Assembly: GCA_977020255.1 (NCBI GenBank)
Contig: CDROCS010003167.1
Location: forward strand, 1-64,000
DNA: 64,000 nucleotides
Reading direction: 5' to 3'
From: Obrimoposthia wandeli
Lineage: Eukaryota
This document shows positions 10,253 to 63,337 of the stretch, piece by piece; within the stretch, counting starts at the first letter, position 1; every line of letters starts with the position of its first letter. The notes below the pieces were generated by a model. That model did not search any database. It had not been told where the DNA came from and was given only the letters and a program-made list of their open reading frames with translations. Made by a program: the position numbers and the translations under genes.

Positions 10253-10295
10253 TGTTTTCAAAAACCATTGACAACCAGAGTGATTGTGGCATTAT
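10253..10295 (+). promoter_or_regulatory. shared promoter element (palindromic box + sigma70 promoter)
   Basis: TGTTTTCAAAAAC-ca-TTGACA-16bp-CATTAT. Confidence 0.7.
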
Positions 10296-10521
10296 TACTA
10301 TAAGTTTTGAGCGTGAGGTAGGAATTGAGGTTCTCCTCAGCAGTAGAGATTTGCATCTTCCTGCACTTTTAGTTTTAAAACAGAAGCTTGGGCTCAGCAC
10401 AATCGTTGACACCACTACCTTCCGTGGTAGTATAGGCCAATCTGTTTAGAGGCTGATTCTTGTGCAAAGAATAGCTCGCGCTCTTTAATTAACAGAAAGA
10501 TATGACATTAATTATAAAGGA

Positions 10522-12045
10522 ATGAAGATGATTTATACAATCAATAATAAGAAAGTGCTCGCACTTGCTGTTGCATCAGCATTAACTCTAACTGCCTGTG
10601 GTGGCGAGAGTGATTCTGGTGATGGCGGCTCTGATAGTGCTAAAGACGCAGCAGTATTGACATTCAATACTGAGGGTGCGACCGGATTTACCACAATGAC
10701 ACAGCCTATCCCATCATCAACTCAGAAGAACGGTTATGCAGCACAGCAATTCTCAGGTGAAGTAGTGGAAGCGCGAACACCTTTCCAGTGCGAATCGTTT
10801 ATGAAAAATGTTGGGACTGACGAAAATGGTATCGCTAGATTAGAACCTCTTTTTGAATTTGGAAGTGATGCAGATCTTGATAAGTTTGGTGCCGTTTGTG
10901 AAGTTCAGAGTGCTATTGCTACCGAGTCAAATTTATATCTTCAAGGGGAGTTTATGAACTTCAAAGTACCTGCCGTGGATGATATGGAAATAGGTTATAC
11001 ATTCCTAAACTGTAGCGTACTTAAGGTGCCAATGGCTGATGCTGGTGGCGATATCGAGTGTATCGCAAAAAGCAGGGAAACAGATGGCGAAATACTTGAG
11101 TATTCATATAGCGCCTTAACAGCAGATAGCAATGCCGATAGTATTTATTACTCTCGAAAAAGTATAGAAACGGAGAACTACTCACTCTTCAAATACAATG
11201 AAAATCAAAAGCTAACTGAATTGTTTAGTATTGCTACTAGTGACGCTCAGAAGGGTTTAAACGCTAGTGGCGACTATGAGGTTTACGTAACAAGCGGAGA
11301 TTACGTAGCTATTAACTATGGTGAAGGCATCGCTCTTGTGGATTCAGAAACCAAGGAAAGTAAGATAGTCTCTCTAGGGCACACTGGTTCGACTAATGCC
11401 AAGATGCTAGGGCTTAGTGGTAAGGTTGTTACAGAGCTAACTAGACCAAATTACGTAGGTAGCATGGTTATCGATCTTGAGAACGGTGAAATTGACTACC
11501 TAAGTTCTTCGGTTCGAATGGATAGATTTACGATGGGATCTGATGATAGTTCTGCTTGGACTGGTGCCCAGTATAACGATGAACTCATGTACCGCCTAGC
11601 CAGTTATGACGTAGAGGCAAACAAACTTAGAAAGGATTCATCTGACACTCTGCTAGCATTCGGTTTCGAGTTTGCGCGTGAAGCTAGTAAGCAGATGCCA
11701 AAAGACCAAGGTCTGTTCGTGAAGAGTAAGGTTGGTGACGAAAACTTCACATATGTACCTGTATCTGGTCAAAATAAATGGGGTGAGCTATTTGTATCCG
11801 CGGTTCACTACATTGATCTAGCTGATAATGAATATCACGATAAATCCAACCTATTAGATGCACTTGATTTAAGCGCATTTGAATACGTGGATCTACTAAG
11901 AGTTTATTCTGGTGGCCTAATCGTCAGTGGTAAGGGGCTAAATGGAGGCCGAGTTCGTGCGTACCTAGACCAACAAACACTGACTGAATACTTCCCTACT
12001 GGCCCAGTTGAGAGTATTCACACGCAGATTGATATCCTCCGTTAA
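10522..12045 (+). CDS. lipoprotein, paralogue of 36562-38136
   Basis: Lipobox LTAC followed by a Gly/Asp/Ser linker; shared blocks R.P.QCE.FM, LYL.G.F.NF.V and NCS.L.VPM...GDIECIA. Confidence 0.85.
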   Translation: MKMIYTINNKKVLALAVASALTLTACGGESDSGDGGSDSAKDAAVLTFNTEGATGFTTMTQPIPSSTQKNGYAAQQFSGEVVEARTPFQCESFMKNVGTDENGIARLEPLFEFGSDADLDKFGAVCEVQSAIATESNLYLQGEFMNFKVPAVDDMEIGYTFLNCSVLKVPMADAGGDIECIAKSRETDGEILEYSYSALTADSNADSIYYSRKSIETENYSLFKYNENQKLTELFSIATSDAQKGLNASGDYEVYVTSGDYVAINYGEGIALVDSETKESKIVSLGHTGSTNAKMLGLSGKVVTELTRPNYVGSMVIDLENGEIDYLSSSVRMDRFTMGSDDSSAWTGAQYNDELMYRLASYDVEANKLRKDSSDTLLAFGFEFAREASKQMPKDQGLFVKSKVGDENFTYVPVSGQNKWGELFVSAVHYIDLADNEYHDKSNLLDALDLSAFEYVDLLRVYSGGLIVSGKGLNGGRVRAYLDQQTLTEYFPTGPVESIHTQIDILR

Positions 12046-12066
12046 GCCTGCCTAAGTTATCAAACT

Positions 12067-12100
12067 AAAAGCCTATCAGTTTATTCTGATGGGCTTTTTT
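12067..12100 (+). terminator. intrinsic terminator
   Basis: aaaagcctatcag-tttatt-ctgatgggc followed by a T tract, downstream of the lipoprotein gene. Confidence 0.8.
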
Positions 12101-12244
12101 GATCTGCGACAAAAGAAAAATGTAATCATTTTACGTGTACTGCGGATTAGCTATTTCGCTTTCTTAAGGTCGTGATGAACTATCATCGTAGCCTTGGTTT
12201 ACGCTCTACCTGCAGGAGCTACTTGTGCGACAGGCCAGCAAAAC

Positions 12245-12278
12245 GCCTATAAAGTCTATATAGATGGACTTTATAGGC
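12245..12278. promoter_or_regulatory. probable HipB operator
   Basis: Perfect 12-bp inverted repeat GCCTATAAAGTC-N10-GACTTTATAGGC about 90 bp upstream of hipB. Confidence 0.65.
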
Positions 12279-12370: not shown

Positions 12371-12679
12371 ATGGCTAAAACAGTTAAAGCGCTTGAAACA
12401 CCAGACCTCTCCCAGCGATTCACCACAACTCTTCTCGGTCAAGCAATCAGAGCAAAGCGAACTCAAAGCAAGTTAACACAAGCTGATGCAGCGGACTTAT
12501 GTGGTATATCCAAACAAACCTACGTGAACATTGAGCAAGGAAAGGGGGATGTTAGGTTGTCCTCAATCATCGAGGTCGTTGCCGGGCTTGGTATTAAGAT
12601 TAATATCGCCCCGTGGCAAGATTTGTCGGGTAAAACACCAGTAACAGAAATAGATGGAGTAGATGATGACTGGGTTTAA
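12371..12679 (+). CDS. hipB: HipB-like XRE HTH antitoxin
   Basis: LTQADAADLCGISKQTYVNIEQG HTH; overlaps hipA. Confidence 0.85.
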   Translation: MAKTVKALETPDLSQRFTTTLLGQAIRAKRTQSKLTQADAADLCGISKQTYVNIEQGKGDVRLSSIIEVVAGLGIKINIAPWQDLSGKTPVTEIDGVDDDWV

Positions 12680-13982
12680 TGGATATGAATTGGATGTTAT
12701 TTATAGTGGCGCGATCATAGCCAAGCTTCAGCTTAGCCGAGAAACCAGTGAGCTAGGCTTAATTTATAGTGACGCTTGGGTGGCCAATGGCTTCCCTATA
12801 TCTCCCCCACTCGGTTTATCTGATGATATACGGCCGTCATCGATCCGAAAATACTTAGAAAACCTACTACCTGAAAACCAAGGTCTTGATTACCTGATTG
12901 AGCACCTTGGGGTTTCGAGAAAAAATGTATTCTCCTTAATTAAGGGCATAGGTGTTGATACATCAGGCGCAGTAATGTTCGTCATGAACTACATCGAAAG
13001 TCAGGTGGAGACAACATTCAGACCTATTGATGATGCCGAATTGATTATGAGATTATCAGATCCAACGGTTTGGAAGATGGAAATTTGGGACGATAAACCG
13101 AGGCTATCTGTCGCCGGTGTACAGTCAAAAATAAACGTCCTGAAAATGAATGACCAATTAGGTTTTGGTGACGGTGATTTGTGCTCAACACACATCATTA
13201 AATTCGAGAAGAATGACCAGCAGCACCTCGTCCTTAATGAGTTCCTTACAATGAACCTCGCGAAATCAGTCGGCTTGGATGTTGCTAATGTTGAATTTAG
13301 ATACTTCGGACAGTATCCAGCCCTGCTAGTCGAGCGCTTTGACCGCAAGCTTGTCGGTAGCGTTGTTAAGCGTAGGCACGTAATTGACTCCTGCCAAGCG
13401 CTAGATGCCTCTGTCGATATGAAGTATGAACGTAATTTGGGAGGCCAGAGAGATGTTAAGCACATACGTGATGGAGTAAGCTTGTCTCGCTTGTTTGGTT
13501 TAGCTGAGCTTTGTGAAAACCCTATAGCTACAAAGCTAGCACTTCTAAATTGGACGTTGTTTAATCTTTGTGTTTTTAACTGTGATTCACACGGTAAGAA
13601 CTTTAGCTTTTTTGTTACCAAGAATGGACTTAAAGCGACTCCACTGTATGACTTGGTTAACGTGCGGATGTATCCAGAGTTTGAGCAAGATTTAGCGATG
13701 GCTTTAGGTGATGAGTTTGATTCAGATACTGTTAACGCATATCAGCTGGTGGACTTCGCAGAGGACTGCAATATAAACCGCAGGCTTCTACGCCGCAGTT
13801 TGGTCATGATGGCCGAGCAAGTGCTCTCAGGGCTTGGTATGTTTGATGCTGCAATGGATACAGTGGGCACCCCTGCTAGTGAGTCTCAAGAAGAGTATAT
13901 AGCTCGCTATAAAGATGTCGTCACACTTAGGTGTAGCCATCTTATCGAGCAATCACATATTATTGATGACATAGAACTTTAA
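12663..13982 (+). CDS. hipA: HipA toxin (Ser/Thr kinase, N-terminal couple domain plus C-terminal kinase)
   Basis: Motifs SVAGVQSK, HIIKF, NEFLTMNLA, LLVERFDR, NCDSHGKNFS, TPLYD. Confidence 0.95.
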   Translation: MMTGFNGYELDVIYSGAIIAKLQLSRETSELGLIYSDAWVANGFPISPPLGLSDDIRPSSIRKYLENLLPENQGLDYLIEHLGVSRKNVFSLIKGIGVDTSGAVMFVMNYIESQVETTFRPIDDAELIMRLSDPTVWKMEIWDDKPRLSVAGVQSKINVLKMNDQLGFGDGDLCSTHIIKFEKNDQQHLVLNEFLTMNLAKSVGLDVANVEFRYFGQYPALLVERFDRKLVGSVVKRRHVIDSCQALDASVDMKYERNLGGQRDVKHIRDGVSLSRLFGLAELCENPIATKLALLNWTLFNLCVFNCDSHGKNFSFFVTKNGLKATPLYDLVNVRMYPEFEQDLAMALGDEFDSDTVNAYQLVDFAEDCNINRRLLRRSLVMMAEQVLSGLGMFDAAMDTVGTPASESQEEYIARYKDVVTLRCSHLIEQSHIIDDIEL

Positions 13983-14042: not shown

Positions 14043-14330
14043 CTAAACCTCTACCTCATATGGTTCTATGACTAAGTTAGATTGCGTAAGCCTGTTTGAG
14101 TTTAGCTCAGCCAATACTGCCTCCGCCTTGCCTTTGCTTGCCAGTGACCAGAATGTTGTGCGGCCGCTAGATGCCGTGACCTCGAAGCCAGAAACCTGCT
14201 TATCTCTATTTTTCCTCAAGCGCGTGACGTAGTGGCTATTAGCTGAGTTTGCGCCGACTTTCAGTCTGTATCGAGTTTTAGTTGTAGGTTTTGGGTTGAG
14301 AGATTTCTCTGGTGATGCATTGCAATTCAT
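14043..14330 (-). CDS. hypothetical protein
   Basis: 95-aa ORF directly behind a shared promoter element. Confidence 0.7.
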   Translation of the reverse strand: MNCNASPEKSLNPKPTTKTRYRLKVGANSANSHYVTRLRKNRDKQVSGFEVTASSGRTTFWSLASKGKAEAVLAELNSNRLTQSNLVIEPYEVEV

Positions 14331-14353
14331 TTCTTGAGCGCCTTAACTTTTTA

Positions 14354-14429
14354 GAGGGAAACCACTTCCCCCTCGACCTGTAACCAATTATACAGGTCAC
14401 GAGAAAAAGAGCAACTGTTTTCGAAAACA
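14354..14429 (-). promoter_or_regulatory. shared promoter element with GTGGT-loop hairpin
   Basis: TGTTTTCGAAAACA-g-TTGCTC-16bp-TATAAT...ACAGGT..GGGAA-GTGGT-TTCCC. Confidence 0.85.
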
Positions 14430-16694: not shown

Positions 16695-17624
16695 TTAGCT
16701 TACCTTGCGCAGAGCTTCACGCAGCATATCCATCTTGACGGTCATGCCGGTGTAGCATCGGTTAGCACTTGAATAATCGTTAATATTTACCAGCTCATCG
16801 CCCATGCTAAGCGATTCAGCCAATCTGTCGAGATAAGGGCTTCCTTGCTCTAGTAATCGAGGTTCTTGAAGTCCGATTTTGATCGCGCGTTCGATATCGG
16901 CGTGAAGCCCCGTCTTTAACAGCTCAGCCATAAACTCAGAGCCCTCTTCAAACATTCCGCACTCGGTCATTGACCATTCAAATGGAAGTTTGGCGGCTTC
17001 ACGGAATGAGGTGGTCGATACCGAATCAGAACTACTTTCAGCTAAGTAAGAGCCAGTAAGTGAGCAATACTCGAAATACGCACCAGTGTGGCGGCAAACG
17101 ATCACGTAATTGCAATCTGTATCTTTGTCATAATCACTGTCATGCATCGAGTCAAAAATATGGATCCAGCGAAAATCATCTGTCGATTCAACCCACTTAC
17201 CATTGTCATCCGTTTTCTTGATCATATCTAATTTTTCTAGATAAAACTCAAACAATAGATTGTTTGGTACGATGGATAGCTCATGTTTGCTGAGGTGCAG
17301 TGGTTTTTCTAGGTGGTTAAACTCAACCTCGTAAAGCATTCCGCCTTTAGCATTGTGACGATTAATAACCGTGCCTACAAGGCCATCGCGAGTGTAAACA
17401 CTTGAACTTGGCTGAATATCACTTTCGACTAGGCCTGATTCAGGTAATGATAAAGGGTTTGGTTTTAAATTTTGAATTTTCTCCACCAGCAAGCTCGTAA
17501 TTTCTTTTGTGGCAAACATGTAAGCTTTTTCGGTCGTTCCTGTCACGAAAACACCCGTGATGTCCATCTGCCCATCGTCCACAAGCTGCTCAATATTTTT
17601 AAATATATCTTTAATTTTTATCAT
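16695..17624 (-). CDS. hypothetical protein
   Basis: 309-aa ORF. Confidence 0.75.
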   Translation of the reverse strand: MIKIKDIFKNIEQLVDDGQMDITGVFVTGTTEKAYMFATKEITSLLVEKIQNLKPNPLSLPESGLVESDIQPSSSVYTRDGLVGTVINRHNAKGGMLYEVEFNHLEKPLHLSKHELSIVPNNLLFEFYLEKLDMIKKTDDNGKWVESTDDFRWIHIFDSMHDSDYDKDTDCNYVIVCRHTGAYFEYCSLTGSYLAESSSDSVSTTSFREAAKLPFEWSMTECGMFEEGSEFMAELLKTGLHADIERAIKIGLQEPRLLEQGSPYLDRLAESLSMGDELVNINDYSSANRCYTGMTVKMDMLREALRKVS

Positions 17625-17698
17625 TTTTTGCCCTTACAGCCTTACAGCTTCTTGTTGGTTGGTTTACTCAAAGTTCAACCTGATGGAGGTAATATTAC

Positions 17699-18226
17699 TT
17701 ATTCTAGGATGTTTTTTAGATTAGGTAATGATATATGGAATTTAGACAAATCTTTTGCTTTGATCTTGTCTTTTAAGTCCTGTGACGTTTTTTCGTCAAC
17801 TTCGATCAGAAAGTTAATCACTTGAGAGTCATCACTTTCAAACAGTTTGCTAAGTAATTCATCTTTAAGCTCACCCGTTGCGTTGCAGCTTTCGCAGTAC
17901 GCATAGCATGAAACCCCGTAGTCAGAGTGTTTTAATGCTAAGGATTTGAAAAGTTCGTAATTGATTTTATTTCTCATCAAAAGACTATCAAGCATATACC
18001 AGCCACAGTCATCGTGAGACTCTTCTTCTTCCATGATCTTGATAAGATTAACAAGAGTTGGTTCATCGTATCCACAAAGGTACGACGCGGCCTTTAATAC
18101 ACCACCGTATGACTCTTGAGCCTGCTGAGGGCTAAGCTTGAACATTGAGCTGAATAATGCTCCGGCTTCTTGTGCAACGATGCCGCTTAACTCACTAGAG
18201 CCATCATTATCTTGGTTTAATAACAT
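17699..18226 (-). CDS. hypothetical protein
   Basis: 175-aa ORF in a same-strand operon. Confidence 0.7.
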   Translation of the reverse strand: MLLNQDNDGSSELSGIVAQEAGALFSSMFKLSPQQAQESYGGVLKAASYLCGYDEPTLVNLIKIMEEEESHDDCGWYMLDSLLMRNKINYELFKSLALKHSDYGVSCYAYCESCNATGELKDELLSKLFESDDSQVINFLIEVDEKTSQDLKDKIKAKDLSKFHISLPNLKNILE

Positions 18227-18244
18227 ATAAGTTTCCTGCGTTGG

Positions 18245-18667
18245 TTAAGTTAGTTTCGTTACAAGCTCAGATAAGCGCGTGAACTCGTTGTTGTCTTCTT
18301 TAATCTCGGCCGTATCGATAAGTAACGTGGCAATCGTGAATTCACGAATATTTCGTTGTTCAGACCTTGGAAGTTGCTCGAAAGTTTTACCACGAAAACT
18401 TTCAAGGTTACCGTCTTTTGGATACGCATATTCAGAGCGTACAAAGCAAAGGATACCCTGCAAGAAATGACTACCGTTATGTACGTGCCATACGCCTGTT
18501 TTATCCTCTGCTATAGTGATACTTGGGACGATGCGACCGCATAGCATATCTAAACTATCAACAATGTGCTGCTCTTTAAAAGCCTCGCTACGAGTAAACA
18601 CTAATTCATCATATTTAAGGCGTTCGCTAAATAGATTGACGATAGGGTTAAGGTTGCGCATTCTCAT
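18245..18667 (-). CDS. degenerate DUF262 (ParB/Srx-fold)-like protein
   Basis: IVDSL..GRIVPSITIAE..G.WHVHNGSHFL..I..FV...L..FRGKTFEQLP..EQRNI mirrors the DUF262 layout, but DGQQR is replaced by NGSHF. Confidence 0.55.
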   Translation of the reverse strand: MRMRNLNPIVNLFSERLKYDELVFTRSEAFKEQHIVDSLDMLCGRIVPSITIAEDKTGVWHVHNGSHFLQGILCFVRSEYAYPKDGNLESFRGKTFEQLPRSEQRNIREFTIATLLIDTAEIKEDNNEFTRLSELVTKLT

Positions 18668-18743
18668 ATTCAGTATCCTATTAAAACAGTATTAGATATT
18701 AATTTTAGCTAAAGAACCGCGCCGTGGCAGCTCTTTAGCTAGA

Positions 18744-19124
18744 TTAGCAACAAGGCATGTCGCCAACAGATTTGAATTCTTGTTCGTGGTACTCTTCGCT
18801 TGAACCGAAAATCAGGAAAGCAACGCCACTCCAAAGGACGTAAACAACCTTGTCATCGAGGTCTACGGCACGGTACACCTTGCCGATACCTCGGTTAGGT
18901 CGAGTGCTATTAAACAATTCTAGTTGATCATCTTTTGTAATCACATCACCATTATATTCGTGAGTCAAAACCCACTCATCGCCACCTGAAATTTGCTCCC
19001 AGCTATAGCCGTAATGAGCAACACCCGTATGCCCAGTGTGGTGAGCCTCTGGCCAAGGGAAGTATGCTTCGAGAGTGAACTCAAGGCAGACTTCTCTATT
19101 GCTGTCAGTCTTAGTAATGGTCAT
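18744..19124 (-). CDS. hypothetical protein
   Basis: 126-aa ORF with AAGGAG RBS behind a shared promoter element. Confidence 0.75.
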   Translation of the reverse strand: MTITKTDSNREVCLEFTLEAYFPWPEAHHTGHTGVAHYGYSWEQISGGDEWVLTHEYNGDVITKDDQLELFNSTRPNRGIGKVYRAVDLDDKVVYVLWSGVAFLIFGSSEEYHEQEFKSVGDMPCC

Positions 19125-19169
19125 GTGAACTCCTTAATTGCAAAGTGGGTAATCTCTAACTTGATACCT

Positions 19170-19212
19170 ATTATACAGAGCACCCTGATAATAGCAACTG
19201 TTTTTGAAAACA
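19170..19212 (-). promoter_or_regulatory. shared promoter element (no hairpin)
   Basis: TGTTTTCAAAAACA-g-TTGCTA-16bp-TATAAT. Confidence 0.8.
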
Positions 19213-19248: not shown

Positions 19249-19572
19249 CTAGTCGTTCAGCAAAGTATAGTGCCTGTCGATCAAGATGAATGACTCACCT
19301 GTAGCGTGACTAATAGCGCCACATTTCTTTTTAACTGGACCAGAAAGGACAAACTTGATTCCAATGCCAGTTTTCTTTAGTGATACACGCTCAACAACGA
19401 TAATTTTTCCGTTGTCAGTGCAAGAATTAACAACCATTTCATCACCAACTTTGACTGGACAATGCTGTTCGCAGATACGTTTGGCCTGCTCGGCCATTAA
19501 TGTTTCGATCTGTTTTTTTTGGTTTGCAAGGTCATTTAATTTTAATAATTCATTTCTCATAAAAATTGCCAA
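19249..19572 (-). CDS. hypothetical protein
   Basis: 107-aa ORF. Confidence 0.65.
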   Translation of the reverse strand: MAIFMRNELLKLNDLANQKKQIETLMAEQAKRICEQHCPVKVGDEMVVNSCTDNGKIIVVERVSLKKTGIGIKFVLSGPVKKKCGAISHATGESFILIDRHYTLLND

Positions 19573-19632
19573 TATAGTTCTAAGTAGTTGCTGGTGTCTT
19601 GGCGCGGATCAACCGCACCAAGTCAATATTAT

Positions 19633-20226
19633 CTAATCACGATAAACATCTTCTGACTCGTTGAACGGTTCACTCCGGTCAAATGTGATGCCACCAGAAA
19701 CAATGCCAACTCTAGCCGCCTCGGGAAGATCGCAGTGATTAGCTGAACTTTGCGACACGCAATCAATAACTGTATGTTTGAACATTTCCGCACAGCAATC
19801 TTCTAGTGATGAAGCCCAAGGTCTTGGATTTGGGTTCTCAGGAATAAGAATATCTCTTACAGACTGAACCATGTCATCAGTTAGGCTTTCGTTAAGGAAT
19901 AGGCGTAAGTTAGCTTTAATGCTTAGCTCTATGTCATCTCGAGTCAACCTGACACCTGTAGTGAAGCTTTGATCTGCGTCAGGCACGTAGAGATCAATGT
20001 TAAGGATAGCATCATCATTCGTTATAGTTTCTTTAACCACTTGCATTTCTATAGCTGGATCCGCTTCATGTCGTTTTAAGGCTAGATTTTTGATAGATTT
20101 GATAAGAAAGTCTAATTCGAATGGGTCATCATCGAGTAATGAATTATAAATCGAATTGATAACTTCGTTCGACATATAGCTTTTTACTGCTATGTGCAGT
20201 GTAACTGGAAGAGATATGATTAACAT
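19633..20226 (-). CDS. hypothetical protein
   Basis: 197-aa ORF behind a shared promoter element. Confidence 0.7.
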   Translation of the reverse strand: MLIISLPVTLHIAVKSYMSNEVINSIYNSLLDDDPFELDFLIKSIKNLALKRHEADPAIEMQVVKETITNDDAILNIDLYVPDADQSFTTGVRLTRDDIELSIKANLRLFLNESLTDDMVQSVRDILIPENPNPRPWASSLEDCCAEMFKHTVIDCVSQSSANHCDLPEAARVGIVSGGITFDRSEPFNESEDVYRD

Positions 20227-20250
20227 ATTGATACTTAACCTTTTACTTTA

Positions 20251-20323
20251 GAGAGGTACCACACCTCTCTACCTGTAGCTATAATAACACGGGGTTACTT
20301 TAATGCAAGTGTTTTTGAAAACA
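20251..20323 (-). promoter_or_regulatory. shared promoter element with GTGGT-loop hairpin
   Basis: TGTTTTCAAAAACA-c-TTGCAT-16bp-TATTAT-AGCTACAGGT-GAGAGGT-GTGGT-ACCTCTC. Confidence 0.85.
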
Positions 20324-20407: not shown

Positions 20408-20983
20408 TTAAGGCATTTCAGCCGTGAATGATCTCAGATCATCTGGTGAATGAGGATTCGCCTCGCCACTGAAGTAGTCAAGAATTGTTCCGTCACTCTC
20501 GAACTCAGCATCATACTCATTGCCGTCATCGGAGAATACTTTGATTACCACCATGCTATTAAGTGACACCTCATCATCAGCAAGCTCTCTGCTGGAATCA
20601 TTTACGATGGTACGACTGATAGCAGCTAGAATGTCTGCACTGTGCGTAACGCAGAGCACATCTCGCTTACTGGCAGATATTTCAAATAGTTCAGTCACTA
20701 TTTCGTGATGATGCTCGCCATGTAAACACGCGTCAGGATGAATTAATGTGATGGCATCACAGTCACCTGCGCGCTCGATCAATTGAGCTACATGACTTTT
20801 TGATTCAAGGGCGTTATGTTGAGCAAAAGCGCTGGCAGGTACAATAAAGTTACCTTGATTACTGAAACCTCTAAGAATGTGGTGTAGCGCACCGGAATTT
20901 TTGTACATCAAAATATAAAGCATTTCTGTGACCTTATTGACTAGTAACTTGTGAGTTTTGGTTCGGTTCGTTTGTTTTGCCAT
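20408..20983 (-). CDS. degenerate C-terminal half of an AAA_21/DUF3696-type ABC ATPase
   Basis: ITLIHPDACLHG resembles IEEPEAHLHP; VLCVTHSADILAAISR resembles the THS H-loop; no Walker A. Confidence 0.5.
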   Translation of the reverse strand: MAKQTNRTKTHKLLVNKVTEMLYILMYKNSGALHHILRGFSNQGNFIVPASAFAQHNALESKSHVAQLIERAGDCDAITLIHPDACLHGEHHHEIVTELFEISASKRDVLCVTHSADILAAISRTIVNDSSRELADDEVSLNSMVVIKVFSDDGNEYDAEFESDGTILDYFSGEANPHSPDDLRSFTAEMP

Positions 20984-21022
20984 TTGGTGCTGGTGGATGC
21001 CACCAGCACTCTTGCAACTTAG

Positions 21023-21346
21023 CTACAGAGAGCCTTTGATTAGCGGAGTCCAGTAATTAACTTCTAGTTGATTAACTTCTAGTTGATTATTCTTAATATC
21101 AACGACAAACGCAGGCTTGGCACTGAAGTGTACACCACCAAGTATATCGCCGTTAAAGTCGTTCACGATTGATATGGTTGAGAAAAGAACGGCAAAAATA
21201 GCCATTAAAATTGATAGCATAATAAAGCTAGATATAACCTCTTCTCTGGCATGTTCTTCTAGGCGTTCCAATTTTTTATCGTAATCAATGAGATACATCT
21301 GCCACCCCCTCTGCGTACGCTCGAACAACCTGCAGTGATTTCTCAA
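21023..21346 (-). CDS. small membrane protein
   Basis: One TM segment; tandem NQLEV duplication encoded by a 15-bp repeat. Confidence 0.6.
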   Translation of the reverse strand: MRNHCRLFERTQRGWQMYLIDYDKKLERLEEHAREEVISSFIMLSILMAIFAVLFSTISIVNDFNGDILGGVHFSAKPAFVVDIKNNQLEVNQLEVNYWTPLIKGSL

Positions 21347-21707
21347 TCAGGGACTTTTTCTGCTCAGGAGTTAAAAATAGCGTGAACTCATCATAGATAA
21401 ATTTAACGTTGTTGTATTTAAAGTCTTCTGGTATTACGTCATTTGTATCGAGTTCGTAGTGATGGAAATCAAGTAGCGCCTTTTGGAACTCGTCAAAATC
21501 AAAGTCTAGTTCGAGTTCATCTTGCTCTTTAGTTATTTCGATGCATTTGACGCTGGGTAATGCTTTTTTAAGGTGGGTGTAGATATCATCAACAAGCGCA
21601 GGGCAGCTGCCGTGGTCATAGCTTGCCAAAATCACTGTGCCATTAAGAAGAACCGCATTAAGTTCCTCATCCGTGCCTTTAAGTAGAACTTCAACTCTTG
21701 CAATCAT
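21285..21707 (-). CDS. acidic hypothetical protein
   Basis: 140-aa ORF with AGGG RBS. Confidence 0.7.
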   Translation of the reverse strand: MIARVEVLLKGTDEELNAVLLNGTVILASYDHGSCPALVDDIYTHLKKALPSVKCIEITKEQDELELDFDFDEFQKALLDFHHYELDTNDVIPEDFKYNNVKFIYDEFTLFLTPEQKKSLIEKSLQVVRAYAEGVADVSH

Positions 21708-21793
21708 GTTATTAATCCCTAGTATTTATTTCGCCTTGACCTCAAGGGCAAGGCGGTTTCGTGATGATGCTGGTGGATGTTTGCTTTGATGGA

Positions 21794-22105
21794 CTACAGC
21801 GAGAATACAATCCACTTGCAATTTTCGTCCATTTCCACGCCCAGCTGGCACGAGAGGTATTTCTTCGGGATAATTGACGGGAAGATATCAATAAGACCTT
21901 TAACACAACGTACATCCCACTGGTCAACGACCTTAATCATGGCCGCTCTGTTTTCTTGTACAGATTCGCTGAATGACACCTTACCCTGATTACCATTGAG
22001 CGCGCTATCAATGAGGGTTCTAAATAGAACTTCAGAGTGATCTTTTTGTAGGTTTAACTGCGCAACAGCAAGGTCTTTTAACTTATCAAATGGAACGTAT
22101 AGCAT
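21794..22105 (-). CDS. hypothetical protein
   Basis: 103-aa ORF. Confidence 0.6.
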   Translation of the reverse strand: MLYVPFDKLKDLAVAQLNLQKDHSEVLFRTLIDSALNGNQGKVSFSESVQENRAAMIKVVDQWDVRCVKGLIDIFPSIIPKKYLSCQLGVEMDENCKWIVFSL

Positions 22106-22213
22106 GATTGTATTTTCCCGTTAGGATTATCTTTGGAGACTGACGGGGTTTTAAGCATTAAACCCGTCAGCGTTAACTCGAATAGCTAGCCCCGTGAGGA
22201 GCCGCTTAATTAC

Positions 22214-22618: not shown

Positions 22619-22644
22619 TGTTTAAGCCTTTAGTCTTAACCTTG

Positions 22645-22719
22645 TCGGCGGTACCACACCCCCGAAACCTGTAGCTATATTACCACAGTAAGCTTCAATG
22701 TAAAGCGTTTTCGAAAACA
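22645..22719 (-). promoter_or_regulatory. shared promoter element with GTGGT-loop hairpin
   Basis: TGTTTTCGAAAAC-gc-TTTACA-16bp-TAATAT-AGCTACAGGT-TCGGGGGT-GTGGT-ACCGCCGA. Confidence 0.85.
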
Positions 22720-47666: not shown

Positions 47667-47678
47667 TTTAGTGAGGTT

Positions 47679-48140: not shown

Positions 48141-48165
48141 ATTTTTGTGCCTTAACCATTTGTTA

Positions 48166-50803: not shown

Positions 50804-50810
50804 AAAAATT

Positions 50811-52472: not shown

Positions 52473-52583
52473 TTACATATCAGTTAAGTTATTTTTCTCG
52501 CTAAAACATGTCCTAATTGGATATGTTTTTTTTTAATACTTAAACAGTTGGTGCATATCATATATAGTTAAATAAAATTAAAA

Positions 52584-54278
52584 ATGATTAAACATAACAA
52601 GGGTTTCTTTATGGCCGAGGCTGTTTTTGTTGCAACTATTATCGCATCCACCGTAGTGGGTAAAGCGAAAATGGATGAATACATTGACCAACAAAATGAC
52701 GCAACAGCCCTAGGTGTGCAACTGACAAGTACATTATCCGCAATAGATAAGCGTATATTTTTGGATGGCTACTACAGCTCAACAGTGTGGGACAAGGTCT
52801 ACCCTGACGCTATATCACTAAGTAATGATTTGTTTAAAAAGGAATTAATAGCGAAGAACAACCCCACTTGCGGGGATGCTTTTGGTGGGTGGGCACCGAG
52901 CATTAGCGTAAACGATGAGCTAGCACTGCTACCTTGTGGTTTTTTTAACCCTACCCTAATCCCTCTAGGTTTTGAAATTAGTGGCTTCAGGAAAGGCGAT
53001 AATGCTGAAGTTACTAAAATCGGATCTTGGGGGCTTGAGTTACATCATAGTGACCCAGATAAGTTTAGTAAATATTTCAAAAGCTACTCCCGCATAATAA
53101 ATACTATCAAACAGAGAAAGGGTGTGCGGATTACAGGGGATTTTAGCGCGTACTTAGTTCAAGTGGGTACAGATAGTAAAATCGATTACCTGAAGTGTGA
53201 GGCTCTTTCTACAAATTGTGCAATTAGAGTTGAGTACACACCTCATGCCGATTCAGCTTTTAGCGCTGAGAATATACGGGTTGATGGTTCAGCATATCTA
53301 CGCAAAGACTTATCTTTTCGAACTGGTTCAACCAAGGCGGAATGCTTTAAAATGGATGGGTTAAATCAGGTTGTAACCAATTGTGGGATCGAAGTCGATG
53401 GGGCTAGTGTAAATGCTAATGTGATGACCTTGACAGTCGAATCACTGATAGCGGCAGCTGATGGAGGGGCTCCGACAGACAGCTTATGTCAGGGCAAGGA
53501 TGGTGCTTTAACATCTTGTGGGATCTCAGTGTTATCTACAAACTCTTCAGTGTACAGCCAGTTACTCACAGGCACACTCTACTTGGAGGATCAGTTAAAG
53601 GTGTATTCAGATAGAGACGGTGCGGACCCTAAAAAGGATGTGGTTCTATCTGTTGATAAAAAGGGAGATGTGTCTATAAAATATAACCTTGGAGTGGAAA
53701 GTGATATAACAACCTCCGGTTCGCTAAAGGCTACAAATGGCGTGAATACGACTAACTTAAATATTGGTAAGGACGCTTGGATTACTGGTGATGCAGTAGC
53801 AGAGGCTCTTGGTGGAGCCGTACCGCCTTTGGAAACGTTTGGTAAGCTGCCAAATAGTTGCGAGGGTAGCTCAATGACAACTAACTCATCAGGCACCATT
53901 TTTCAGTGCGTAAATTCTAACTGGTTGAAAGTTGACTACCCTTCTCAAGCAGTACTCCCTTTTAAGACAGCGTGCCCAGATGGATGGACCCCTTTGGTAA
54001 TTCCAGCGGGTTACAGAGTAAAAGCCACGGACGACCCGCGCAAGATTGGTCTGGTAACTAATAAGCCAATAACGACTAAGCTTACAGAGCGCAATATACC
54101 GGCTCATACGCATAAATGGGGGCGTTACAGTATGTCAAGTGCCAAGAGAAAGCACAAGAGTCCACGAAGAGTTAGACTTCGTGGTACTTTTAATACGACA
54201 CCAAATAACAATGTATCATCTTCAAGTGTTAATTTTAGATCTCAGACTATGGCTGTTAACTTCTGCAAGAAGGGATGA
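52584..54278 (+). CDS. PilV-like prepilin adhesin C' (paralogue of 31049-32803)
   Basis: HNKG|FFMAE; RIFLDGY; GTIFQCVNSNW; LPFKTACPDGW; NIPAHTH; ends FCKKG. Confidence 0.75.
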   Translation: MIKHNKGFFMAEAVFVATIIASTVVGKAKMDEYIDQQNDATALGVQLTSTLSAIDKRIFLDGYYSSTVWDKVYPDAISLSNDLFKKELIAKNNPTCGDAFGGWAPSISVNDELALLPCGFFNPTLIPLGFEISGFRKGDNAEVTKIGSWGLELHHSDPDKFSKYFKSYSRIINTIKQRKGVRITGDFSAYLVQVGTDSKIDYLKCEALSTNCAIRVEYTPHADSAFSAENIRVDGSAYLRKDLSFRTGSTKAECFKMDGLNQVVTNCGIEVDGASVNANVMTLTVESLIAAADGGAPTDSLCQGKDGALTSCGISVLSTNSSVYSQLLTGTLYLEDQLKVYSDRDGADPKKDVVLSVDKKGDVSIKYNLGVESDITTSGSLKATNGVNTTNLNIGKDAWITGDAVAEALGGAVPPLETFGKLPNSCEGSSMTTNSSGTIFQCVNSNWLKVDYPSQAVLPFKTACPDGWTPLVIPAGYRVKATDDPRKIGLVTNKPITTKLTERNIPAHTHKWGRYSMSSAKRKHKSPRRVRLRGTFNTTPNNNVSSSSVNFRSQTMAVNFCKKG

Positions 54279-57004: not shown

Positions 57005-60000
57005 ATGTATAATGGCGGCATACAAACAAACAAGGTGAACGACATGGACTTACTTAATCAATTTGCAGCAGAACAACATATAGAAGTAAACAACATTCTG
57101 ATCAATGCTGTTGCAGATGATAACGCTCACCTTGTGGCTATACATGATGAGTTCCTTAATGTTGTCGCCGACGCTCAAGCGGTTATCGAACATCCAGCTG
57201 CAGCGGTGGTTCACGTAGGATTTAGTAGCGGCAAGGACAGTAATCTTGTTTTAATCGCGATTATGGAAGCTTACAGACGCTCTATTGCTAGTGGAGCTAT
57301 CGAACCTGAACGATTATTACTTGTCAGCACGATTGATACTCTAATTGAAGCTCTACCTATGCAATTCATGGTTGATTTTAGTAAGCACTACATTGCAAAA
57401 TTTGCAAAAAAACATAACATTAATCTTGTTCACACAATTACATCCCCGACGTTAAGTTCAGAGTACTTCGTCAAGTACGCCGGAGCAGATAAATTAGTAA
57501 ATAATCCAAGTAGAACAGGGGATTGCACGAATATCCTCAAGTTAGACCCGGCAATGAAAGTGCTTTCTATGCAGCGAAAAACAATCTTAGATGGCAAGCG
57601 AGTTATAAGCTGTACAGGTTCAAGAAATGAGGAAAGTCCTCGCCGTCTAATGAACATGAGAAAGCAAGGCGTAAGCAATAAAGCCGTTGACACAATTTTG
57701 ATGGAAATGAGCATGACAGAACTAAGCTCAACCATTAACTTCGCGCCGATACGAGACTGGCCGACCTCTGATGTGTTCGACTTCCTCCGTATCATCGGCA
57801 GTGATGCCTTATATAGCATTAGAGATCAGCGTGACCCTGTTGAATCATACTTCCCACACTTTGCCCTACTCCTTGAGATTTACGGCAAGGCTAGCAACGA
57901 AGCGTGCTCAATCACGGTTAATGTATCAGGTAAGACTGAGTCTAATGGTTGTGGTGGTAGCAGTGAGCGATACGGTTGTAATTTCTGCACCCGCATCATC
58001 ACAGATCGAAGCGCGATTAGTGTGTCACAAAAGCCATACTGGGATTTCCTCGGCACTACTGATGCCCTAAGAGTTCGCGACTGGCTTAGCCGCACAGCAT
58101 CAAATCCGGACGCAAGAACAATGCACCCAAAAGCTGTCGACCCAGTGTTTAACCGAATCATGTTCCAGAGTAATGTTTTGAAGCCCCGTTTTCTGGAGAA
58201 AATGGTAAAATATGCGAGTCAATTAACAGTTAACGCGATAGCTAAAGCGAGTGAATTTGACGACCTAATAAAGCAAGGTAGAGAGGCTGAGCATGAAGGT
58301 TATGCAGCGATTTTAAGTGATAACTCGATTCACCCGAAAGCTAAAGATCAGCTCCTTAAAATGTATAAATCTGGCGCTAGAAAGCCTTACATGCCCTACT
58401 TCAGCCTAAAACATGCAACTCTACTTTCTATGAAGTGGTCATTACTAGGTGTTAGCTCAGCACCGTATCGTCCTCTTAAGATCTGGGATGATGCAGTTAA
58501 AGGCAATGGCGTTATCCCATTCCCTAAATTAAACAGCGAGCTACCGAAGTCGGAATGGGAAATGAAGTCAACGCCAATGGTTGATCCAATTGTACTCCCT
58601 GTACACCCTGCTGAATTTGAAAAGACATTTTTTGAAGAAGGTAAACCTCTCCTGTCTTACTGGGAGAAGCCTTTTGATATTATGGATATGTACGATCATT
58701 CAAACTGCCGCAAAGCGAAGAAGCCGAAAGGAACGTACATGATCAAGGCTTTCTTCAGCGGAACGTTCAATGCTTGTGAAAATGGAATATCACTATCAGT
58801 CGATATAACGAAGGTCGCTGACGCAAAAACGGGTAAAGCTCTGGATTTTAACAATGAATGGGTTGCCAAGTCAGAAATTGAATCTCTACTTGAGAACAAG
58901 GTCTTTTCATACCTAATAGAAAACCATGGTGTGAACAGGTTTAGCGACCTAAGCTTCACAAACAAGCAGGACGCTGAAAAAGCCGCGAGAGAACTTACAT
59001 TATTAGTGAAAGATGTAGAAAGCGGTAACCTCTCAATCTGCTACCTAAATAAAAAGCCTTTATTTTCTGGGATAAAAAAAGAACCTGTAAAATCAATCCC
59101 GAAACGCAATGCGACAGAGCGCGTTAGATTGAGTGGTAAGTCAGGGAAAGTTGTGAAAACATCGACCAGATGTAAATTCTACACACCGAGCACTACACCT
59201 AACCTAGAATTAAAGGTCTGTAACTTCATCAATATGGCCGTAGTCGACTTCAACACAGAAGATGAAAGTACAATTTCAATTCGAGATTACTTTGATGAAA
59301 TACCGAGTGAAATCGAGCCTATTATGTTCAACGAATTAGAGCATCTAAACTGGCTAGACTACGGTGGCTACGAAAAAGCAATCCAACTCCACGATGAGTT
59401 TGTTGAAAGCAAAATTAAGTATCGCCATCTGCAAGACATGCCGCGTGTTCGCCGATACTCAGGTAGTGAGCCAATTTCCCGATTAATGAATGAATCAGGG
59501 CTTATGATTGAACCGAGTTACAAGAAACAGTTCGAAAAAACACTCAAGCGAACACATCTACTAAAAGAGTGCGGAGCATTTGATTTGCAAGCGTTGTCGT
59601 TTGATGATCTTACGGCATACAAAGGTACTATAAGCATGGAACAGCACCGCAGTGATAAGGCAGCTTACCTACTCAAGGTACGTGCAAAGAAAAACGAACA
59701 ACGCCGTGATATTAAAAATCTTGCAGCTAAAGCCAAGACAGACCTACCGTCTTTCGTAGTTGATGTGGCCACTAAAATTCAAAGCGATCTTTTTGCAAAC
59801 GCTATGAGTTACATTGATTACCTAGACGGCATGGCAATCGACTCTGATGGGTTTGTATCGGGCTCAGGTGTTGATTGTGAGGTACCAATGAAGACACAGA
59901 TAAAGGCGTTCAAAACTTGGTTCAACTTTTACGGCGCGGCACTATCAAGCTATGATGAATTTAAAAAGGTCTTCCTCGGCCAAGATTACAACAAGGCTCT

Positions 60001-60343
60001 GTCTTGTAATAGATTCTCTGACTTAGCAATTAGCCGAGCTCATAACAAACTACAGATTAAGCTAGAAAAAGCTGTAGCGACCTGCTCTCATGAGTTAACT
60101 GTTGATTTAAGCAATATGGACCAGAAATCTGTTGAGAAAAATATCGTCAGCAACATGAGCACAAATGATAAAGTAAGCGCTATGAGTGATATGATTCGGG
60201 CGGCTAAAAAAAATAATTCAAGCGGTATGGATAAAAAAGCAGCTAAGATAAACATTGATAGAAAAACTGTCACTAACATGAGTGCAAGTGATAAAGTAAG
60301 CGCTATGAGTAACGTTCTACAAAATTTAAAGAAGGCATCGTAA
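57005..60343 (+). CDS. giant DndC-like PAPS-reductase-family (PP-loop, Fe-S) protein with long C-terminal extension
   Basis: FSSGKDS, DTLIE, CTNILKLDP, GSRNEESPRR, APIRDWPTSDVFDFL, EAC, GCGGSSERYGCNFCT. The start may be ATG 57044. Confidence 0.8.
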   Translation: MYNGGIQTNKVNDMDLLNQFAAEQHIEVNNILINAVADDNAHLVAIHDEFLNVVADAQAVIEHPAAAVVHVGFSSGKDSNLVLIAIMEAYRRSIASGAIEPERLLLVSTIDTLIEALPMQFMVDFSKHYIAKFAKKHNINLVHTITSPTLSSEYFVKYAGADKLVNNPSRTGDCTNILKLDPAMKVLSMQRKTILDGKRVISCTGSRNEESPRRLMNMRKQGVSNKAVDTILMEMSMTELSSTINFAPIRDWPTSDVFDFLRIIGSDALYSIRDQRDPVESYFPHFALLLEIYGKASNEACSITVNVSGKTESNGCGGSSERYGCNFCTRIITDRSAISVSQKPYWDFLGTTDALRVRDWLSRTASNPDARTMHPKAVDPVFNRIMFQSNVLKPRFLEKMVKYASQLTVNAIAKASEFDDLIKQGREAEHEGYAAILSDNSIHPKAKDQLLKMYKSGARKPYMPYFSLKHATLLSMKWSLLGVSSAPYRPLKIWDDAVKGNGVIPFPKLNSELPKSEWEMKSTPMVDPIVLPVHPAEFEKTFFEEGKPLLSYWEKPFDIMDMYDHSNCRKAKKPKGTYMIKAFFSGTFNACENGISLSVDITKVADAKTGKALDFNNEWVAKSEIESLLENKVFSYLIENHGVNRFSDLSFTNKQDAEKAARELTLLVKDVESGNLSICYLNKKPLFSGIKKEPVKSIPKRNATERVRLSGKSGKVVKTSTRCKFYTPSTTPNLELKVCNFINMAVVDFNTEDESTISIRDYFDEIPSEIEPIMFNELEHLNWLDYGGYEKAIQLHDEFVESKIKYRHLQDMPRVRRYSGSEPISRLMNESGLMIEPSYKKQFEKTLKRTHLLKECGAFDLQALSFDDLTAYKGTISMEQHRSDKAAYLLKVRAKKNEQRRDIKNLAAKAKTDLPSFVVDVATKIQSDLFANAMSYIDYLDGMAIDSDGFVSGSGVDCEVPMKTQIKAFKTWFNFYGAALSSYDEFKKVFLGQDYNKALSCNRFSDLAISRAHNKLQIKLEKAVATCSHELTVDLSNMDQKSVEKNIVSNMSTNDKVSAMSDMIRAAKKNNSSGMDKKAAKINIDRKTVTNMSASDKVSAMSNVLQNLKKAS

Positions 60344-61758: not shown

Positions 61759-61778
61759 GCGATACAACAGCCTCAAAT

Positions 61779-61802
61779 AAAAAAGGCCTCTTTTGGAGGC
61801 CT
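61779..61802. terminator. terminator-like hairpin between convergent genes
   Basis: aggcctc-ttttg-gaggcct flanked by an A tract. Confidence 0.6.
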
Positions 61803-61829
61803 GAAAATATTCTAATTATTCACTAGTGC

Positions 61830-63059
61830 TCATGATGTGCAGGAAACTGGTCGGTCATCTAGCTCAACATTTACATAACCACCATCAATACCATCAATAC
61901 CGGATTCGGTATAAACTTTGAGAATGGTTAATTTAGTTCCATCACCACTAACTCCTCTGTACAGCGTAAACAGCTCAAAACGGTCAATGAGATTGAAACT
62001 TAAATGTGAAATTTGAGCTGAGCGATTACCTAAATCAAGTTGGAATGGTGTTTTTGTCCAAACAGACAAACAGTTGTAACTTCTTCCTGTTGTTAACTGG
62101 TGTGTATTAGCTTTTCGATCAGCCCACATGGCCGTTTCTTTTTTCTCTAAACTCTGCTTATGCAATTGGTTTTTCTTGAGTAAATCTCTTTGCTTTTTAT
62201 TTATTTCCGGTTGTCGCGCTTTGACTGTAGGCATCATTGTGTCGTACTTCATTTGAGCTGTACCATGAGGTAATTCACAGGCTTGCGTCTCTTTGACGAA
62301 ATTAGCGAAATGAGTGTTATATTGATCTCGTATCTGAAGGCATAACTGCTTTACTGTGCTATTGAATAGGCGAGCCTCTTTTTTCCACTTGGTCACGTTA
62401 CTAGCTATTTCTTGTTCAGCGATTTTTACGTCTTTTTCATGCACAACAGGCAGCATGATGTTAAGTTTAATCTCGCTAGGCGAGCCCTGCATACCCATTA
62501 TTTGATCATGAGTCTGGCAAGTTCTTTTTTCAGAATTGTAGCGTGAGTACTTAAATGCTCCACACAACTCCTCAATAGTATTATAGGTTTCAGCTTCTTT
62601 TATCCACGCTGTATTTTGGGATTTCTGTAAGACCTTTTCATTATTAATAAACTCGATTAGCCCTTCTTTATCGTTTGCAGCAAAGTTTGCTTTATTACCT
62701 CCATAACCAGATTTCACATAGCAGCGTCGTTCAAGTCCACGACCATCTAGGTAACCGCCTGTATCTTTACATACTCTGATAAAATCTAATCTTTCTTCTT
62801 CTTTTTTGATTTCTGCCTGCCTCAAAGATAGGGAATATTGGATGTGCGCATCTTTTATTACATTAAACATGTTGCATTCACCACTCTTTGTTAGCAACAA
62901 TCCGTTTTCTCGGCATACTTGATTTCTGTCGAGATTATGCGCCTGCATCTGATCTTTAACTTCATCGCTTGTGGTAGCGCAACCGGTAACAAGTAAAGCC
63001 GTAGAGCACAATATAGCAAATCCAGAACTTTTCATTTTCATTTTCATTTTCATTTTCAT
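61830..63059 (-). CDS. lipoprotein with MKMKMKMKMK N-terminus
   Basis: Lipobox VTGC; several Cys pairs and coiled-coil segments. Confidence 0.8.
   Translation of the reverse strand: MKMKMKMKMKSSGFAILCSTALLVTGCATTSDEVKDQMQAHNLDRNQVCRENGLLLTKSGECNMFNVIKDAHIQYSLSLRQAEIKKEEERLDFIRVCKDTGGYLDGRGLERRCYVKSGYGGNKANFAANDKEGLIEFINNEKVLQKSQNTAWIKEAETYNTIEELCGAFKYSRYNSEKRTCQTHDQIMGMQGSPSEIKLNIMLPVVHEKDVKIAEQEIASNVTKWKKEARLFNSTVKQLCLQIRDQYNTHFANFVKETQACELPHGTAQMKYDTMMPTVKARQPEINKKQRDLLKKNQLHKQSLEKKETAMWADRKANTHQLTTGRSYNCLSVWTKTPFQLDLGNRSAQISHLSFNLIDRFELFTLYRGVSGDGTKLTILKVYTESGIDGIDGGYVNVELDDRPVSCTS
63029..63058. repeat. (TTTTCA)5 microsatellite encoding five tandem Met-Lys
   Basis: Five perfect units at the start of the lipoprotein gene. 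Confidence 0.9.
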
Positions 63060-63294
63060 TTTACCAATCCTTAGTTAACTGTAATGATTTTCAGACGAGA
63101 TATTGATATTAATAGCTTAGTCTTAACATGCTAAATACAAATCTAAACTATCTAGCTATGGGTTATCACATAGTACCACGCACTACCTACAAGTGGATAT
63201 ACAAGTGTTTGTTATAAGTCATCTAAAGTGGTTGTAATAACATAGCCAAGAGAGGTTGCGTTCACATTAATATTGCCTTGTGTTAACACTGCTT

Positions 63295-63337
63295 TGTTTT
63301 CAAAAACCATTGACTACAACTCTAAACGTGGTAATAT
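63295..63337 (+). promoter_or_regulatory. shared promoter element (no hairpin)
   Basis: TGTTTTCAAAAAC-ca-TTGACT-16bp-TAATAT. Confidence 0.8.

Follow-up and report, generated by a model that had tools for sequence, protein, structure and literature searches.

A 14-bp palindromic box stands in front of promoters throughout a stretch of 64,000 nucleotides (nt), here called the window, which comprises bases 1-64000 of contig CDROCS010003167.1 (C3167; 91,785 bp) from the 1.35-Gb assembly of an animal, Obrimoposthia wandeli. The box opens a cassette of about 95 bp, in which it is followed by a -35 element, a 16-bp spacer, a mostly extended -10 element and, in many copies, a short hairpin in the predicted leader. 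Fifteen such cassettes on C3167, together with two on a second contig, C4300 (24,254 bp, 40.5% GC), would unite about 43 genes, most of them orphans, in a single regulon. We regard it as an even call, made on sequence grounds, that the box is the operator of a dedicated repressor of dyad symmetry (a dimer) and that the leader hairpin adds an element acting at the RNA level.

The box and its promoter register

The 13-mer TGTTTTYRAAAAC is present without mismatch at each of the 12 window positions reported in the first-pass annotation of this DNA, with 19 strand-wise matches against 0.00 in 100 dinucleotide-preserving shuffles. Nineteen matches at 12 sites mean that most copies are complete 14-bp palindromes. 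Five further copies, absent from that annotation, lie outside the window, three on the rest of C3167 (84452, 85500, and 86486), which raises the number on the contig to 15, and two on C4300, both in the standard register, for 17 copies overall. All boxes are intergenic, and each faces a gene. With up to two mismatches permitted in the 14-mer, no more than two sites are gained, both in coding sequence; at up to three mismatches, the distribution is bimodal, with 15 intergenic sites at 0-1 mismatch and the sites with 2-3 mismatches scattered and mostly coding, and there is no graded tail between good and poor matches.

In a gapless alignment anchored on the box, its 12 specified positions are invariant in all 16 aligned copies, and its information content exceeds that of the -35 or the -10, making it the most conserved part of the promoter. 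G2 and C13 are invariant, and the distal T is kept in 16 of 17 copies. The central dinucleotide is CA in eight copies, TG in seven, CG in two, and never TA, an avoidance with P of about 0.008 (0.75^17). Given that CA and TG are mutually complementary, the centre of the box appears to be read regardless of promoter direction, as by a symmetric dimer.

Fifteen of the 17 copies (11 of the 12 in the window) share one register, namely box, 1 nt, -35, 16 nt, and -10, which bears out the oriented promoter family proposed earlier (box adjoining the -35, fixed 16-bp spacer, often extended -10). The -35 keeps a nearly invariant TTG (TTGACA, TTGACT, TTTACA, TTGCAT, and others), and the -10 reads TATTAT, TAATAT, or TATAAT, mostly with TGn before it; a consensus promoter scan independently called several of the cassettes as 16-nt-spacer promoters with the TG. 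The exceptions in register are the copy at 41116, whose -35 and -10 are displaced by about 3-4 nt, and that at 86486, with its box set about 14 nt farther upstream. The spacer between -35 and -10 is not conserved. Because the spacers have diverged while the motifs have been kept, the family seems to be held together by selection on the motifs and not by recent duplication, with the exception of the cassettes at 40634 and 41116, which have a common leader and a common N-terminus of the first gene product. Promoters with the same core occur without a box at 7060 (-), 14558 (+), and 82478 (-), which suggests that the box is an add-on and not part of the basal promoter. Transcription is predicted to start 7 nt past the -10, on the A of the conserved sequence cAGGU; counted from this predicted start, the box spans -49 to -36, with its centre at -42.5, close to the -42 estimated earlier. 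The predicted 5′ untranslated region (UTR) measures 39-52 nt in 11 of the 15 cassettes of C3167.

The cassettes are confined to the two contigs within an assembly that also contains many bacterial and phage contigs. A pattern of box, GGT, and GTGG run over the whole assembly retrieves C3167 and one C4300 site, plus three scattered AT-rich matches, and a looser pattern (box, -35, and -10) finds bacterial-type promoters only on C3167 and C4300, catching in addition a eukaryotic repeat family and AT-rich chance matches. This repeat family of the animal genome carries GTTTTCAAAAACACTTGAACATCCTACTAATATTATAAT, a box followed by a promoter-like string, at sites such as C298:803097, C811:250526, C942:343702, and C1142:133081; it is unrelated to the plasmid and may mislead whole-assembly motif scans.

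In public collections, a pattern that requires box, CAGGT, and GTGG together, and would thus miss box-bearing promoters without a hairpin, gave only single chance matches in coding sequence among 185,579 species genomes, 241 million metagenome records, and 2.9 million viral contigs, and none of them had promoter features. No match to a whole cassette was obtained by blastn (word 11) against 72,556 plasmids, IncN and IncW included, and a literature search for the box as a string returned only unrelated primers and cDNAs. The 14-mer itself occurs at most four times, and usually 0-1 times, per genome in a sample of 401 genomes belonging to the class of a metagenome-assembled genome labelled Gammaproteobacteria. 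The box is thus not a common chromosomal site in the genomes searched; had it been one, this would have spoken, according to the first-pass annotation, against a plasmid regulon.

The leader hairpin

Eleven of the 17 promoters carry a hairpin at about +5 to +30 from the predicted start, a feature absent from the earlier annotation. The predicted transcript begins with AGGU and within 0-6 nt enters a stem-loop of 5-9 bp with the loop GUGGU (GUGGC once), after which come a UAAGG-type Shine-Dalgarno site and ATG. In the alignment of the 11 hairpins, 88% of cells are standard pairs, whereas shifting the 3′ arm by 1-3 columns lowers this to 41-62%; compensatory changes, on both sides, are seen in all eight pairs, and none of 500 shuffles equalled the observed pairing or covariation. 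Folding energies of the single sequences are modest (-4 to -13 kcal/mol; z-scores +0.65 to -3.9), and the minimum-free-energy fold places GUGG in the loop every time. A covariance model and a direct search for hairpins with a GTGG loop both retrieve essentially only the copies behind boxes: the hairpin is accompanied by a box in 11 of 11 cases, and six boxes have no hairpin. One of the two C4300 cassettes carries it as gcagcGUGGUgcugc, again with a different stem sequence. Since the arms covary around a fixed, asymmetric loop, what is conserved appears to be a single-stranded structure, most likely of RNA, and not a double-stranded operator.

No Rfam family matches the hairpin, either at the gathering threshold or at E ≤ 1. 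An intrinsic terminator was rejected because there is no U-tract. A sigma70-dependent pause at the GTGGTA of the hairpin was dropped because half of the copies lack an A at the -11-like position, and an RfaH/ops-like element because no NusG paralogue was found. With lambdoid boxB pentaloops the hairpin shares a five-base loop that is fixed while the stem varies, but the loop is GUGGU instead of the GAAAA or GACAA of boxB-type loops, and a lambdoid nut site is not recognized, with no boxA, no N-like or NusG-like protein, no Rfam match, and no enrichment of terminator-like sites in the 36-50 kb region (12 vs 10.7 expected).

A further likeness is to ompA hp1 and the leader of T7 gene 10, in which a short stem-loop near the 5′ end is likewise followed by a strong ribosome site. 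The hairpins of cassette 2 (14349-14377) and of the T7 gene 10 leader are both 8-bp stem-loops with a five-base loop at the 5′ end, and the 3′ arm and tail of the former, GGTTTCCCTCTAAAAA, are nearly identical to the T7 hairpin, GGTTTCCCTCTAGAAA; this is probably chance, the other cassettes having different stems. At 82400-82480 (-) of C3167, a promoter without a box (TTGACA, 17 nt, TGgTACTAT) is followed by the hairpin aaggu-AUGGU-gccuu, which looks like a variant leader without the operator.

The cassettes and their replicon

The cassettes of the window and their genes are listed below; each line gives the span and strand of the cassette.

10253-10302 (+): cassette 1, box 10253-10266 (TGTTTTCAAAAACC), -35 TTGACA, 16-nt spacer, -10 CATTAT after TGg, predicted start at about 10302, without a GUGGU hairpin; a 5′ UTR of 220 nt precedes a lipoprotein gene (10522-12045).
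14349-14429 (-): cassette 2, box 14416-14429, -35 TTGCTC, -10 TATAAT, hairpin agggggaaGUGGUuucccucu; a monocistronic gene for a basic protein of 95 amino acids (aa), 14043-14330.
19163-19212 (-): cassette 3, box 19199-19212, -35 TTGCTA, -10 TATAAT, without a hairpin; a four-gene operon, 16695-19124.
20246-20323 (-): cassette 4, box 20310-20323, -35 TTGCAT, -10 TATTAT after TGt, hairpin agagagguGUGGUaccucucu; an operon, 19249-20226.
22641-22719 (-): cassette 5, box 22706-22719 (13-mer at 22707), -35 TTTACA, -10 TAATAT after TGg, hairpin cgggggu-GUGGU-accgccg; a five-gene operon, 20408-22618.
26179-26257 (+): cassette 6, box 26179-26192, -35 TTGCGC, -10 TATTAT after TGt, hairpin agaaacGUGGUguuucu; a monocistronic acidic open reading frame (ORF) of 80 aa, 26280-26522.
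38382-38458 (-): cassette 7, box 38445-38458, -35 TTGTAA, -10 TATTAT after TGt, a weak hairpin with GUGG in a larger loop; a 5′ UTR of 273 nt precedes a lipoprotein gene (36562-38136) and three genes for PilV-like prepilin paralogues (31049-36285).
40569-40647 (-): cassette 8, box 40634-40647, -35 TTTACA, -10 TACTAT after TGg, hairpin uaaagguGUGGUaccuuua; an operon, 38531-40553, whose last gene has a CinA domain.
41047-41129 (-): cassette 9, box 41116-41129, -35 and -10 off the common register by 3-4 nt, hairpin identical to that of cassette 8; a monocistronic ORF of 89 aa, 40762-41031, its N-terminus paralogous to the first gene of cassette 8.
43461-43538 (-): cassette 10, box 43525-43538 (13-mer at 43526), -35 TTGATT, -10 TATAAT, hairpin ggaaacGUGGUguuucc; an operon for an LPD29-domain protein, an ADP-ribosylglycohydrolase (41789-42682), and an ORF (41164-41664).
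48159-48235 (-): cassette 11, box 48222-48235 (13-mer at 48223), -35 TTGCGT, -10 TATTAT after TGg, hairpin gagguGUGGUaccuc; a five-gene ORFan operon, 44671-48140.
63295-63344 (+): cassette 12, box 63295-63308, -35 TTGACT, -10 TAATAT after TGg, without a hairpin; an operon that opens with a zinc-ribbon ORF of 83 aa (63389-63640) and continues past the end of the window.

The boxes do head operons of hypothetical genes, as had been claimed: the approximately 43 ORFs behind the 15 copies on C3167 are mostly orphan, and the first genes are mostly small and acidic (isoelectric point 4.1-5.4). Among the genes with recognizable domains are those for CinA (38531-39022 (-), 2e-30), the ADP-ribosylglycohydrolase (41789-42682 (-), 1.5e-30), and LPD29 (42770-43477 (-), 5e-9), all cassette-driven, for which NAD/ADP-ribose-related counter-defence functions are possible. 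Together with a weak Lar-like zinc ribbon and the small acidic ORFans, they lend circumstantial support to the earlier proposal of a zygotically induced establishment or anti-defence regulon; on the other side, no ArdA, ArdB, KlcA, PsiB, or SSB family was detected. One cassette drives a lipoprotein and three PilV-like pilins, none of them of the establishment kind. For the cassette genes as a whole, a part in establishment or anti-defence is weakly supported.

The pilin-like genes form two inverted triplets, 31049-38136 (-) and 49073-54278 (+), encoding six proteins of about 560 aa with prepilin-type N-termini (GFTxxE) that resemble PilV/shufflon tip adhesins by language-model features (Atlas, 0.95). 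Paralogue pairs across the triplets are 42-43% identical, and one PilV-like protein has a single weak plasmid match. The lipoprotein preceding the minus-strand triplet (524 aa) has paralogues at 10522-12045 and on C4300. No pilus-assembly genes were seen on C3167, and an invertible segment between the triplets was rejected because no boundary inverted repeats were found.

The replicon looks like a plasmid. The plasmid nature assumed earlier is borne out on C3167 by type II partition genes (ParM with a gene at the ParR position), by HipA with a HipB-like helix-turn-helix (HTH) protein, and by a resolvase/invertase, and the PilV-like pilins and the reductase genes nrdD and nrdG add to the likeness; a distant DnaB-like helicase and an S26 peptidase are also encoded. 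No relaxase or type IV secretion genes, as for conjugation, were found on C3167, and searches of PHROGs turned up no virion match, whether for the ten first genes, for the ten largest ORFs lacking annotation, or among the 25 families that were listed for the remaining 62 ORFs. The closest relative of the ParM is from Photobacterium sp. DA100 (68% identity), with no box within 20 kb of that parM. A large protein database holds no homologues of the DnaB-like helicase, the LPD29 protein, or a 118-aa protein common to both contigs, and megablast of 10.5 kb against PLSDB plasmids and GenBank phages gave no match. Judged from sequence, this is a marine plasmid lineage whose proteins are almost without relatives among billions of database sequences.

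Three neighbouring loci deserve mention. At 12371-13982 (+) of the window, 3′ of cassette 1, the gene for the HipB-like HTH protein (102 aa) overlaps that for the HipA kinase toxin (439 aa; HipA_C 4e-43), a complete-looking type II toxin-antitoxin pair that probably has its own promoter (325-nt gap). At 69255-72543 of C3167, an XRE-family HTH protein (173 aa), the sole unassigned classical HTH of the contig, is encoded immediately 5′ of the anaerobic ribonucleotide reductase genes nrdD and nrdG, an unusual plasmid-borne cargo. The window also encodes, at 57005-60343 (+), an 1112-aa protein with a PAPS-reductase domain (1.6e-5).

Proposed repression and its rivals

Read as a regulatory unit, the cassette would run from the palindrome at -49 to -36 through the -35, the 16-bp spacer, the extended -10, and a start at the A of cAGGU to the 5′-proximal GUGG(U)-loop stem-loop, the UAAGG Shine-Dalgarno site, and ATG. 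A protein bound at the box would clash with both sigma region 4 and the alpha C-terminal domain, which favours repression over activation. So does the look of the core promoters, apparently self-sufficient with TTG at -35 and TGn plus a 5/6 match at -10, and so, by analogy, do the documented plasmid circuits of this design, which are negative (ArdK, Reg576, and KorB class I). We infer that regulation is most likely by repression, the repressor being encoded by the replicon, and the genes would be expressed in a burst in any cell that lacks the repressor or has it titrated away, in the manner of ArdK, KorA/KorB, and Reg576. The leader hairpin would form a second layer at the RNA level, at minimum as an mRNA-stabilising 5′ stem-loop; the combination of an invariant loop with covarying stems makes it probable that a specific factor binds there as well.

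Several points weigh against this reading. Pfam (E ≤ 0.01) and PHROGs searches of about 100 ORFs of C3167, a contig that is not closed, found no regulator: the only HTH matches are the HipB-like protein, the XRE protein (C3167 69255-69776), and the resolvase/invertase, and there is no KorA/ArdK (KorA/TrfB-type), ribbon-helix-helix, ParB, or NusG match. The earlier remark that a regulator is not evident in the window thus applies equally to the remaining 28 kb, and the gene for it may be located on another part of the replicon or in the host. The only small protein common to both contigs, that of 118 aa (window 5433-5789), has neither homologues nor a recognizable DNA-binding fold; its AF2 model (pLDDT 70) is alpha-beta4-alpha and has no fold match in the PDB. 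The two contigs share only two protein families, at about 30% identity, and C4300 may be a separate replicon or a further part of that of C3167; given that the two may be one replicon, its boxes are not counted as independent conservation. In addition, the T4-N2-A4-N3 directly upstream of the -35 has the look of an UP element, and a centre at -42.5 is the classic position of an activator. As to other candidates, the 95-aa basic protein of cassette 2 was tried as the regulator and rejected, with only two weak ankyrin-repeat-like matches among 1.8 billion representatives and no lead from Atlas, and AF2 gave no usable model of the zinc-ribbon protein of 83 aa (pLDDT 45).

The first-pass annotation had compared the boxes with the CUP repeats and ArdK regulon of IncN plasmids. 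As a way of working, the comparison stands, as ArdK of R388 acts as the repressor of five establishment promoters by way of an operator that adjoins and includes the -35 (PMC9723621). As homology it does not, because blastn against the 72,556 plasmids found no sequence homology between the cassette and the CUP repeats and no KorA/ArdK protein was detected. In ArdK (IncW R388, IncN pKM101) and KorA (IncP-1) systems, one small plasmid regulator governs dispersed strong promoters of early or establishment genes, and the promoters, as here, share an operator; the number of promoters is five to seven there and 15 here, or 17 with C4300. The ArdK operator is a direct repeat, TTGACA-N4-TTGACA, whereas the box is a 14-bp inverted repeat of different sequence, and the KorA inverted repeat sits at -10 instead of -42.5. 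The KorA operator, the short inverted repeat GTTTAGCTAAAC, has the GTTT....AAAC outline in common with the box, and we know of no conserved leader hairpin in ArdK or KorA systems. KorB of the IncP-1 plasmid RK2 has twelve dispersed copies of a 13-bp palindrome, of which those of class I adjoin the -35 on its upstream side and act in repression. The boxes resemble these class I copies in being dispersed palindromes just upstream of the -35, but KorB is of ParB type, whereas partition here is ParM/ParR, no ParB-family protein scored above threshold, and the operator sequence differs. Reg576 of the Bacillus pumilus plasmid p576 is an autoregulated repressor of four establishment promoters that are transiently de-repressed after transfer (PMC6294495). 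It differs in being a ribbon-helix-helix protein, a class with no match here, in binding dual TTATCCC heptamers, in its Gram-positive host, and in governing four promoters instead of 15-17. The cassette thus works like these plasmid regulons, departs from each in regulator or operator, and adds an RNA element.

Possible, and more doubtful than the repressor itself, is an extension in which the cassette is a two-key switch, with the replicon-specific operator and the GUGGU hairpin served by two dedicated factors, or one bifunctional factor, that jointly set transcription and mRNA fate. To our knowledge, no plasmid has yet been described in which an operator and a leader RNA element are coupled throughout.

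Among the alternatives, activation of class II type fares best, unlikely as we hold it to be. A regulator at -42.5 would recruit RNA polymerase through sigma region 4 or alpha and turn on all cassettes jointly, for instance at a given stage or in response to a signal. Lambda cI at PRM and LuxR-type proteins at lux boxes activate in this way. The predicted centre is canonical with respect to known activator positions; many -35 hexamers match the consensus at only 3-5 of 6 positions, the 16-bp spacer is sub-optimal, and C3167 does encode an XRE/cI-type HTH protein. Nevertheless, with TTG near-invariant and most copies having TGn and a near-consensus -10, the promoters are of a kind normally independent of activators, the same cores occur without a box, and known plasmid-wide circuits are overwhelmingly negative (PMC9723621, PMC6294495).

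Rather improbable is a cassette without a dedicated regulator, in which the box would be a UP-element-like T/A-tract for the alpha C-terminal domains and the whole a strong, constitutive, insulated module. The layout TTTT-YR-AAAA-CAn-TTG is present in 15 of 17 copies, the box agrees to within 1 bp with the promoter-proximal part of the UP consensus reportedly obtained by SELEX by Estrem et al. in 1998, and the 5′ hairpin with its strong ribosome site would suit a stabilising leader of the T7 gene 10 or ompA hp1 kind. Yet UP elements need neither the invariant G2 and C13 nor the distal T, the two 'n' positions are limited here to YR with TA excluded, and the centre is found in both orientations. 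We know of no UP family with 12 invariant positions over 17 promoters whose spacers have diverged. A UP-element contribution alongside the operator role is possible.

We give little credence to a co-opted host site, in which the box would serve a transcription factor of the host chromosome and the regulon would report host physiology and not plasmid entry. This reading would fit the lack of a plasmid-encoded candidate on a contig that is not closed; it sits badly with the scarcity of boxes in the 401 sampled genomes, with the chance matches of the three public-collection scans (which would miss hairpin-less promoters), and with the finding that no other bacterial contig of the assembly has a box in register with a promoter. 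Very improbable, finally, is a site-specific recombination site that spreads or exchanges promoter-leader modules through crossover at the central dinucleotide by the serine invertase of C3167: TTTTCAAAAACC matches the half-site of Hin hix (hixL) at 11 of 12 positions, an invertase is encoded, and similarity between cassettes starts exactly at the box, but a 26-bp hix-type site has two 12-bp inverted half-sites around a 2-bp crossover, whereas only one half-site-like 12-mer is present, with the dyad axis of the box misplaced inside it and flanks that are not conserved, the diverged spacers exclude recent spread, and no inverted-repeat junctions flank the inverted pilin gene sets.

Global regulons keep dozens of plasmid accessory genes cheap for the host yet ready in a new cell, and few plasmid-wide ones have been dissected (KorA/KorB, ArdK, StbA, and Reg576). 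With 15-17 promoters and about 43 genes, the regulon proposed here would be unusually large, with a sharply defined operator and a covarying, fixed-loop leader hairpin. The box singles out a coherent group of orphan genes, of which many are small and acidic, that could be screened for function, such as anti-defence activity, and offers a compact bait for a new DNA-binding protein, possibly an RNA-binding one too; the 95-bp cassette is small enough for synthesis and testing in a laboratory host. Should the two-key switch prove true, transcription and mRNA fate of about half of the genes of this plasmid lineage would be set together.

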